The notes beneath the pieces are model-generated. The model was given only the letters and a program-made list of their open reading frames with translations. It did no database searches and was not told the origin of the DNA. From Setoptus koraiensis (lineage: Eukaryota > Animalia > Arthropoda), in assembly GCA_048013815.1 (NCBI GenBank), contig CM106586.1:10602001-10666000 (forward strand): a DNA stretch of 64,000 bases. Reading direction: 5' to 3'. How positions within the stretch are numbered: the first letter of the stretch is position 1; the number at the start of each line of letters is the position of its first letter. The translations under genes were made by a program, and so were the position numbers. Below, piece by piece: positions 21,269-23,854 of the stretch.

Positions 21269-21550
21269 TTAATTCAATTCTTCCATTTCTGCCTTGATTT
21301 GTTCCTCTTGTGTTGGCGGCTTGCTTGAGATAGGTCGCCTGAATAGTAGGATGTGAGGTTCTGGCTCGTGGATCATATAATGTATCCAACCATGACTTTG
21401 CTGTACACCAATAGCTCTCCATTCTGTCTCTGACATGAGGTGGCCCCTGGGCACAAGTTTGGCGATCTCAGGCGTCACCTGGACATGTCTGTATTCATAC
21501 TGGTCATCATAATATTTGTCCGAGTATAATATTTGCTTTTTGCTAGACAT
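21269..21550 (-). CDS. CKS1: Cyclin-dependent kinase regulatory subunit Cks1/Cks30A
   Basis: [52 protein letters not shown]. True start is the Met at 21550. Confidence 0.95.
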
Positions 21551-21717
21551 TGTATGAGATGATGAGATAGAGATTCTTATGTATAATATATGGCAATGAA
21601 GGAGTAAATAATATAAGGTGGCCTTCGTTGATATCATACAACCAACGATATTTTTCATAAATTGTCGCTCCTTTATAATGTTACAACAATAACACGAGAG
21701 TTTCCATGGGCCATAAG

Positions 21718-22115
21718 CAGGCGCGCATTGTCCGGTATATAACACCACCACGAGAGGGTCGTTCCTAACCAAGAGTACGCATGCGTTTTTCTAAGTAAAC
21801 CAGCGGGAATTTCGACTGGTTTTGGGGCGACGGTTGTTTCCACTATTTGAACGTTTTTACTCACTGAAATTCCCATTAGAAGATCCCGCTTCTCCTGCTT
21901 TCATGTTGTCCCATTCTGCCGCTAGCCTCACTAACACGCGCGCGGTCACTCAGTGAACGGGGCAACGGGGAAAAAGTGCGAGAATCCAGACCCTCATCAG
22001 TGAATTTTCACTGGTGCTGTCGAAATTCCCGCTGGTATTTACCCTAACGCATGCGTACTCAAAGTTGTGAACGTCTTATTTCAACTGGTGCTATGTACCG
22101 GACAATGCGCGCCTG
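21718..22115. promoter_or_regulatory. Inverted-duplicated promoter cassette between CKS1 and cyclin B
   Basis: Block A: 21718-21746 vs 22087-22115, 27/29 reverse-complement identity. Block B: 21773-21787 vs 22046-22060, 15/15. Block C: 21799-21816 vs 22019-22036, 18/18. Outward TATA-like boxes at 21672-21677 (minus strand) and 22146-22153 (plus strand). Confidence 0.85.
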
Positions 22116-22426
22116 TTTTCGTTCATGGGCTATCCGCTGGATTTCTATATAAAGCATTGGCCGTTGGATTTTAGTGTTGGTTAAATGTCGTTTTCTACGC
22201 TGGCGACTCTTTTGAAACCTCTATTATAACTCTCACACTTTTGTTAAAATATTATCATACATCTTAAGTCACACCAACCACTCATCCCACATCGACCAGA
22301 CAAATTATTAAATTATTTAATATAATCTTACATTAGATTAGTTAGCGATCTCAAACGACAAACGGCATTTAAGAACGATAATCTCATCATCAACTGTAAA
22401 CATCGCCACTGAAATAAATCGTAAAA

Positions 22427-23854
22427 ATGTCTCAGAGACAGGGTCTAACTGACAGGCAGCGAGGTATTTCCGTCAACAGAAACTTGAACAATTTGATTCA
22501 GCCGAACAACAATGCCCCAGACCAACAGCATGCCTTCAAGAACCCCACCATCAACATGTTGAAGGCTCGCGCTTTCGCCAATAACGACAATCAATCGAAG
22601 ACAACGTTAGTCCAGAAGGGCCGCCTCTCAACACTTGTATCTAATCATCAAACCACGACGAAGCTCAACAATGTCAATCATGACGAAAATGCGCCCATTG
22701 CCGCTCATGGTATCGATCTACCTCAGCTAGATCCGCTAACAGGTAAATTATCAAAGTTGAAATTAAACATCGCTGACAACAATGTCGCCGCCGCTGCTGC
22801 CATCGCAACCGCCAATAACACCGTCAATAATGTGCCACAAGTAACCTTGGGTGATATTTTTAAAAAGAGAGCCTCCAGTAGGATACCAAGACTATCTATA
22901 AGGCCACAACCGCCCATTGAGACGCCTGTTGATGAGCAGCCTATGGACATAACCTTTATCGATGACGACGACGGCTTACCGGAAGGAGTTGAAGACATTG
23001 ACAATCCCACTAGTCGTGATGCTATCTTTCAGGTTACAGATTTCGTCAAAGATATCTATGAATACTTACGCTACCTGGAGAAGGTCCAGTGCATACATCC
23101 AAATTTTCTAAAGAATCAAAAAATCTACACAGCCCGTATTAGAACGCGCTTGGTTAACTGGTGTATTCAAATTCATGAGCAACTCAAATTGCTACCCGAA
23201 ACACTATATTTAGCAATTGCCATCATGGATCGTTATTTTCAAGCTGTCGATAACGTTCAGCAGAACCAAGTTCAACTTATTGGAGCTGTAGCATTGTTTG
23301 TAGCTTCAAAATACGAAGAAATATACCCACCTGACATAAGTGATCTAGTTCATCTTTGCACTGGTAATTATCATCGCCGTGATATAATAAAAATGGAAAT
23401 AAGCATTCTCAAGGCATTGCAGTTTGATTTGGGTCGCCCACTGCCACTGTCATTTTTAAGAAGATTCTCGAGAGTAGCCCATTGTGACCTGAAAATGCAC
23501 ACTTTGGCAAAATATTTAATGGAACTTTCCCTTTGTGAATATGAATGTGCCCATTGGAAGCCATCTCTGTTAGCAGCATCAGCATTGTACGTGACAATAG
23601 TACTTATGGGCGATGGTCTATGGACTAGATCGCTGATATATTATACTGGCTATGAGGAACATCAACTCAAAGCGCACGCATCTATTTTGTGTAAACTGAT
23701 CAAGAAAAGCACGAAGTCCCCTCAGCTTTACAATGCTTATAAAAAATATTCCTCTTCAGTTGCTCTATGGTCACCACTTAGATCTCCGAATGTCGATAAA
23801 CTTGCTACCCACAATTTGTCTTGCAAACTACCTACTATTAACGCCGCAATGTAA
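22427..23854 (+). CDS. CycB: G2/M cyclin B, intronless, 475 aa
   Basis: LPEGVEDID..VKDIYEYLRYLE, LLPETLYLAIAIMDRY, VASKYEEIYPP, LGRPLPLSFLRRFSR (cyclin B signature), AKYLMELSL. Confidence 0.9.
   Translation: MSQRQGLTDRQRGISVNRNLNNLIQPNNNAPDQQHAFKNPTINMLKARAFANNDNQSKTTLVQKGRLSTLVSNHQTTTKLNNVNHDENAPIAAHGIDLPQLDPLTGKLSKLKLNIADNNVAAAAAIATANNTVNNVPQVTLGDIFKKRASSRIPRLSIRPQPPIETPVDEQPMDITFIDDDDGLPEGVEDIDNPTSRDAIFQVTDFVKDIYEYLRYLEKVQCIHPNFLKNQKIYTARIRTRLVNWCIQIHEQLKLLPETLYLAIAIMDRYFQAVDNVQQNQVQLIGAVALFVASKYEEIYPPDISDLVHLCTGNYHRRDIIKMEISILKALQFDLGRPLPLSFLRRFSRVAHCDLKMHTLAKYLMELSLCEYECAHWKPSLLAASALYVTIVLMGDGLWTRSLIYYTGYEEHQLKAHASILCKLIKKSTKSPQLYNAYKKYSSSVALWSPLRSPNVDKLATHNLSCKLPTINAAM

Follow-up and report, generated by a model that had tools for sequence, protein, structure and literature searches.

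A mirrored promoter cassette between the CKS1 and cyclin B genes of an eriophyoid mite, a probable product of an old fold-back duplication

Among mammalian promoters of the DREAM/MuvB CDE-CHR type, CCNB1/2 and CKS1B/CKS2 are CHR genes, and tandem elements are defined by a CDE placed four nucleotides upstream of the CHR (PMC4176359). Where a head-to-head pair of mammalian genes shares a CHR, only one of the two is regulated by it (PMC4176359). NRF1 together with CDE/CHR forms a known cell-cycle module, as at Plk4 (PMC3874167), and fold-back at interrupted inverted repeats leaves mirror arms round a short loop (PMC4689423).

The locus described here lies within a 64,000-nucleotide stretch of DNA (the window, to which all positions refer) on contig 2 of a 48.76-Mb genome of two contigs in which most genes lack introns. 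The cyclin B tree and the homologues behind it place the host among the eriophyoid mites, within a three-member clade that is sister to the Aceria tosichella group in that tree. The spacer between its CKS1 and cyclin B genes occurs once in the genome and probably goes back to an old fold-back event that duplicated a proximal promoter, with both copies under constraint; this origin is likelier than selection for an identical mitotic input.

The mirrored spacer

CKS1 and cyclin B are divergent, with an ATG-to-ATG gap of 876 bp (21551-22426), which places them within the limit of 1 kb for head-to-head pairs; Pfam profiles and coordinates agree with the preliminary description in this respect. Because the two start codons lie 876 bp apart on opposite strands, both transcription start sites should fall inside this interval, barring undetected 5' exons. 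The CKS1 protein is 99% identical in a related species.

The best inverted local alignment of the spacer scored 104.5, against a mean of 25.7 and a maximum of 34.5 for shuffled sequences. The arms pair 21715-21747 with 22086-22118 (91% identical), 21760-21787 with 22046-22073 (100%) and 21799-21816 with 22019-22036 (100%). The inverted order A-B-C...C'-B'-A' that had been proposed was recovered, with 27/29, 15/15 and 18/18 identical positions between arms for A, B and C, as was a TATA-like box for each arm, TATAAAG at 21671-21677 (minus) and 22148-22154 (plus). The reported spacings, an A-B spacer of 26 bp in both arms despite diverged sequence and a B-C spacer of 11 versus 9 bp, likewise hold in this genome; the A-B spacers retain 11/26 identical positions between arms (shuffle mean 6.5, p=0.035).

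The mirror reaches further than first described, outward through the TATA box and an initiator-like site and inward to a short loop. Positions 21640-22182 form one decayed palindrome round a 38-bp loop, with about 250 bp per arm, and each gene has its own directional copy of C-B-A-TATA-Inr. Outward of A, both arms carry TATAAAG and, about 30 bp further on at the initiator position, TTGGTT (TCGGTT in one arm). Of four comparisons between arms of the 36 bp after the TATA box, three show likeness beyond chance (p=0.0002, 0.003 and 0.0002) and the one within this genome gives p=0.09; common initiator constraints could add to this likeness. On the inner side of C, likeness persists between 21862-21916 and 21955-22013 (p=0.013, and p<=0.001 in the relative), while the leaders and start codons of the two arms show no likeness (p=0.40). 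The features are as follows.

21269-21550, minus strand: CKS1 coding sequence, 93 aa, intronless (Pfam CKS, E=1.7e-36)
21640-21645, minus strand: initiator-like TTGGTT of the CKS1 side, about 30 bp downstream of TATA, mirroring 22177-22182 and kept in the relative; CKS1 start site predicted near 21644
21671-21677, minus strand: TATAAAG of the CKS1 side, kept in the relative's contig L055
21718-21746, minus strand: block A, CKS1 arm, 27/29 conserved in the relative
21773-21787, minus strand: block B, CKS1 arm, palindrome ACGCATGCGT, 14/15 conserved in the relative
21799-21816, minus strand: block C, CKS1 arm, with an E2F-like GCGGGAA core, a 4-nt spacer and a CHR-like TTCGAC; 17/18 conserved plus a 1-bp insertion in the relative
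21817-21861, unstranded: segment of about 40 bp found in the CKS1 arm only, a gap in the arm-to-arm alignment; 39/44 conserved in the relative
21862-21916, minus strand: inner decayed part of the left arm
21917-21954, unstranded: central fold-back loop of 38 bp, little conserved and about 30 bp long in the relative
21955-22013, plus strand: inner decayed part of the right arm, overlapping a small palindrome at 21995-22016
22019-22036, plus strand: block C, cyclin B arm, 18/18 conserved in the relative
22046-22060, plus strand: block B, cyclin B arm, 14/15 conserved in the relative
22087-22115, plus strand: block A, cyclin B arm, 29/29 conserved in the relative
22148-22154, plus strand: TATAAAG of the cyclin B side, conserved in the relative
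22177-22182, plus strand: initiator-like TTGGTT of the cyclin B side, mirroring 21640-21645; cyclin B start site predicted near 22179
22427-23854, plus strand: cyclin B coding sequence, 475 aa, intronless (Pfam Cyclin_N and Cyclin_C; homologues named cyclin B)

That each gene gathered the same generic sites separately, with no duplication, is scarcely credible. Parts of A and B are indeed common genomic motifs, but the blocks are 15-29 bp long and follow the same order in both arms, the B-C combination is confined to these two arms in this genome, and the leftover likeness in the spacers, the interior and the TATA-Inr region largely refutes such convergence.

Conservation in a related species

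A related species is represented by contigs L027 and L055 of one run (SRR33593474), which we infer to join through an AAT run. Its cyclin B is 89% identical, both arms are present, and the gene order RPB2-COASY-CKS1 is the same. Alignment with a related mite had been suggested as a check, absence from a sister species counting against the idea; both arms are kept. In a further relative with 76% identity (L028, from ERR10899952), the 219 bp recovered upstream of cyclin B are uninformative on the mirror, and the CKS1 search missed its other contig. By a crude estimate, the spacers have diverged roughly five times as much between arms as between the two species, from which the mirror is predicted to be present in this further relative too. 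The cassette is thus seen in two species, which do not fix the donor arm or the ancestral state within the clade.

At fourfold-degenerate sites the two species are 65% identical (570/873). Blocks were defined by arm-to-arm similarity alone and then compared between species, where 119/124 block positions (96%) were identical as against 203/274 (74%) of the non-block cassette positions (p=3e-8); the blocks of the CKS1 arm alone, at 58/62, exceed the fourfold rate (p=5e-7). Since the blocks were chosen by similarity between arms and yet are conserved between species, the footprint holds in an independent test, and the comparison indicates that the blocks of both arms are under purifying selection. 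It had been proposed that selection keeps the motifs and their spacing: the motifs are kept, but the spacing is not, and rigid spacing was rejected, the A-B distance being 26/26 bp here and 24/28 bp in the relative. The distance from A to TATA is 40/32 bp here, and 29 and at least about 65 bp in the relative.

Across A-C, 13 sites have an arm-specific pattern and none a species-specific one, from which it follows that the duplication predates the species split and that the arms have since evolved apart; no signature of conversion was found across A-C in the two species compared. Beside the loop, two base pairs are changed on both sides between the species, too few to interpret, which could reflect local conversion or selection on a hairpin. 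Within the otherwise drifting interior, a 22-bp stretch at 21995-22016, which contains a small palindrome with 7-bp arms and a 2-bp loop, is identical in the relative.

These patterns bear on a further alternative, which we consider very improbable: that it is not factor binding but structure (a DNA cruciform or an RNA hairpin), or else repeated gene conversion, that keeps the arms alike. The region folds as a long stem, the interior measures 202 bp in both species, and the two-sided changes near the loop would fit. On the other side, A-C contains no compensatory change, its mismatches favour neither strand and no species-specific shared site occurs across it; parts of A and of B also turn up as single sites at other places in the genome. 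A structured non-coding RNA was rejected, the best Rfam match having E=3.3 and A-C showing no two-sided change.

Candidate factor sites

Block C has the shape AGCGG-GAAT-TTCGAC in three of four arms, that is, a GC-rich CDE four bases upstream of a hexamer, as in the tandem definition. The hexamer TTCGAC does not occur among the CHR variants of PMC4176359, where TTCGAA, TTCGAG and TTCGAT are verified. Compared with the E2F consensus TTTSSCGC, three arms read ATTCCCGC and one TTTCCCGC; this canonical form arises in the relative's left arm, where the 1-bp insertion in C breaks the spacing to the CHR-like half. The genome encodes LIN54 as one gene with two TCR domains, and block C is a candidate E2F/DREAM-type site.

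The MYB and CHR hexamers listed in the preliminary description are all present, but single hexamers occur at the genomic background rate (1.7 and 1.4 per kb), and CHR 22211 and MYB 21963, 22082 and 22161 are changed in the relative. Over six lineages, CHR elements are not enriched (15 observed, 15.7 expected), and CHR and single MYB hexamers were therefore dropped as evidence. Myb-type YAACKG sites are enriched over the same number of lineages (17 versus 8.1, p about 0.003; CAACGG, 10 versus 1.9). As far as these sequences tell, the old shared feature is a Myb-type input rather than the cassette, though its sites turn over. The segment confined to the CKS1 arm holds a Myb-like CAACCG (21831-21836) and a CHR TTTGAA (21846-21851). 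Because this segment contains the sole CHR that is conserved, along with a Myb-like site, an identical input to CKS1 and cyclin B, as had been claimed, is unlikely; the spacers, too, are arm-specific.

Block B had been described as an NRF1/Ewg-like palindrome. The palindrome and its general likeness stand, but the sequence departs from the NRF1 consensus on either side, all four arms carrying ACGCATGCGT where the NRF1/Ewg consensus is GCGCATGCGC. Human NRF1 binds precisely this doubly altered variant only weakly (PMC10810270 Table 2). The mite genome has two NRF1/Ewg paralogues, both of which keep the positions matching R206, N242 and R244, and the retention of these base-reading residues predicts the human preference for mite NRF1. 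For these reasons block B may be a weak NRF1 site or the site of another factor. Near-matches to B are enriched in the genome (13 versus 5 for the control), several of them upstream of genes. The paralogues lie at L058:991-2418 and L059:1363-2664, the second with an insertion of about 80 residues late in the DNA-binding domain.

The TATA-proximal 11-14 bases of block A are a recurrent genomic motif. GGCGCGCATTG has 102 genomic copies against 13-32 expected under Markov models trained on 220 kb, and GCGCATTGTCC has 39 against 11-18 under the same models; one copy of GGCGCGCATTG lies 327 bp upstream of CDK1. The TATA-proximal half also includes a single perfect NRF1 half-site, together with a core, GGCGCGC, that we take to resemble E2F sites. 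The earlier view that block A matches no nameable factor still applies, and the block would bind a factor yet to be named. In the upstream region of CDK1 (L100) the halves of block A stand apart, with GGCGCGCATTG at -327 and ACCGGACAA closer to the ATG. Upstream of a ULK-like kinase, L094:872-889 is a perfect 18-bp palindrome centred on ATGCGCAT that shares ACAATGCGC with block A. A metagenome scan for A returned ten GC-rich contigs (56-69% GC) lacking CKS, cyclin and block B, which were taken as chance.

A search for the blocks upstream of other mitotic genes, also suggested earlier, found the full A-B-C module at none of the cell-cycle promoters examined (cyclin A, B3 and E, CDK1, CDK2, Polo, three Aurora-like genes and MELK), which carry fragments only. 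Two of the Aurora-like genes (L090 and L092) are Aurora-B-like paralogues, each about 305 aa long, whose kinase domains are almost identical, and a longer Aurora-A-like gene is found at L085. On contig 2 near 18.9405 Mb, L090:2668-3112 is a MITE-like element 445 bp long, in which the word TCCCG occurs 21 times and whose terminal inverted repeats measure at least 17 bp; it ends about 280 bp upstream of the Aurora-B-like start codon and is a source of many E2F-like cores.

Origin of the cassette and comparison with known systems

In the 48.8-Mb genome the spacer matched itself alone by BLAST, a search that can skip very common words, and a 20-mer of block A had no further match at up to two mismatches. 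Neither species shows matching flanks indicative of a target-site duplication, and none of five other divergent spacers of this genome showed a mirror. Many copies at random positions, as expected of MITE terminal inverted repeats, had been named as grounds for abandoning the promoter interpretation; the cassette is single-copy, and a MITE family was rejected on the lack of further copies and of a target-site duplication. An extinct MITE or fold-back element lodged between the genes, its terminal motifs co-opted as promoter sites, is nevertheless conceivable, if quite improbable. The interval from A to A' measures 398 bp and begins with CAGG, promoters of this genome do hold MITE-like elements (L090), and the CERP2/CELE2 elements of Caenorhabditis offer a precedent (10.1101/2022.01.21.477252). 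But besides the single copy and the missing duplication, homology does not end sharply at a terminal repeat, running on past A through TATA and Inr, and mites that lack the cassette have the same TATA context ahead of their cyclin B gene.

The gene pair itself is more widespread. At six sister-clade loci (cyclin B 37-55% identical), CKS1 lies head-to-head with cyclin B, and none of the six spacers has a mirror beyond simple repeats; by this comparison, the head-to-head arrangement long predates the cassette. In Leptotrombidium, CKS1 and cyclin B are consecutive accessions on one 12-kb contig (relative orientation not seen), and in Dinothrombium they lie 8 kb apart on the same strand with MKLP1 between; in Fragariocoptes cyclin B is absent within 6 kb. 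The literature searched held no description of CKS1-cyclin B linkage across distant mites.

Several neighbourhoods have features of their own. In Dinothrombium tinctorium (L057:8001-16640), a small mitotic cluster is formed by three genes of the same strand, those for CKS1, the mitotic kinesin MKLP1/KIF23 and cyclin B, all within some 8 kb, and shared longest-contig sizes (11341, 7014, 7798, 8031, 17060 and 2223 bp) among several CKS and cyclin B matches hint at linkage in more mite samples. At L029, L033, L034 and L036, DCTN5 lies tail-to-tail with CKS1, where the host lineage has COASY and RPB2, and L029, L033 and L034 share, upstream of cyclin B, a conserved stretch of some 20 bp that contains two Myb-type sites.

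Of the six distant loci, five have a TATA(A)AAGC(G)-type box upstream of cyclin B. Because of this box and because the right spacer is better kept, we lean, weakly, towards cyclin B as the donor and CKS1 as the recipient of the promoter copy.

The fold-back origin would thus have started from a CKS1/cyclin B pair already head-to-head. A local inverted duplication would have copied the whole proximal promoter, from mid-spacer through C, B, A, TATA and initiator, and the copy would have landed across the spacer, replacing the promoter there. Purifying selection would then have kept the factor-binding blocks in both copies, since both genes are needed for mitosis, while the remainder drifted, leaving the footprint. 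That the blocks bind factors, and that a repair or replication route produced the duplication, are suppositions of this model. Common regulation of CKS1 and cyclin B is likely a consequence of the duplication, and may also be the reason why the promoter swap was tolerated.

A more adaptive account, that the duplication spread and was kept to give two CDK1 partners the same timed and balanced input, a single directional promoter being unable to serve both sides, is in our view unlikely. In its favour, both arms are constrained, the genes are still linked across acariform mites, NRF1 with CDE/CHR is an established module (PMC3874167), and a mirrored copy would solve the mammalian problem of a shared CHR driving one gene per head-to-head pair (PMC4176359). 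However, distant mites keep the pair without the mirror, spacing is not conserved, the arms differ by the conserved segment of about 40 bp, and conservation of each arm is expected anyway of a gene's only promoter.

Under the fold-back origin, the locus is a natural experiment in promoter grammar, in which two copies of equal age serve different genes and reveal which positions matter and that the spacing need not be exact. It also allows a test of whether a mirrored module is needed to regulate both head-to-head genes (cf. PMC4176359). A bolder and rather doubtful proposal is that fold-back copying recurrently re-wires neighbouring genes in this mite lineage, that at CKS1/cyclin B selection fixed a mirrored directional cell-cycle promoter driving both CDK1 partners, and that block A is the site of an undescribed factor also acting at CDK1.

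With the DREAM/MuvB and NRF1 promoters (PMC4176359; Plk4, PMC3874167), the cassette shares the GC-rich core, 4-nt spacer and CHR-like hexamer of block C, an adjoining NRF1-like site, and the presence of LIN54 and NRF1 genes; it differs in that TTCGAC falls outside the CHR variants of PMC4176359, B is off the NRF1 consensus and C lies about 140-155 bp from the predicted start; these are candidate sites. The CERP2/CELE2 elements (10.1101/2022.01.21.477252) likewise carry promoter motifs in inverted arrangement, but are MITE-derived families of thousands of copies, whereas the mite cassette occurs once, shows no target-site duplication and takes in the core promoter as well. ODIRA and tandem-inverted-duplication models (PMC4689423) also yield mirror arms round a short non-palindromic loop; duplications of the ODIRA type copy genes, whereas the mite cassette comprises a promoter of about 250 bp per arm, fixed and old, with no second junction identified. 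Human PRR11-SKA2 (PMC5372550) resembles the locus in that two divergent mitotic genes, under 1 kb from each other, share an upstream region; the human pair is reported to be under coordinate control by NF-Y, whereas each gene of the mite pair has its own mirrored whole promoter with TATA box and initiator-like site.
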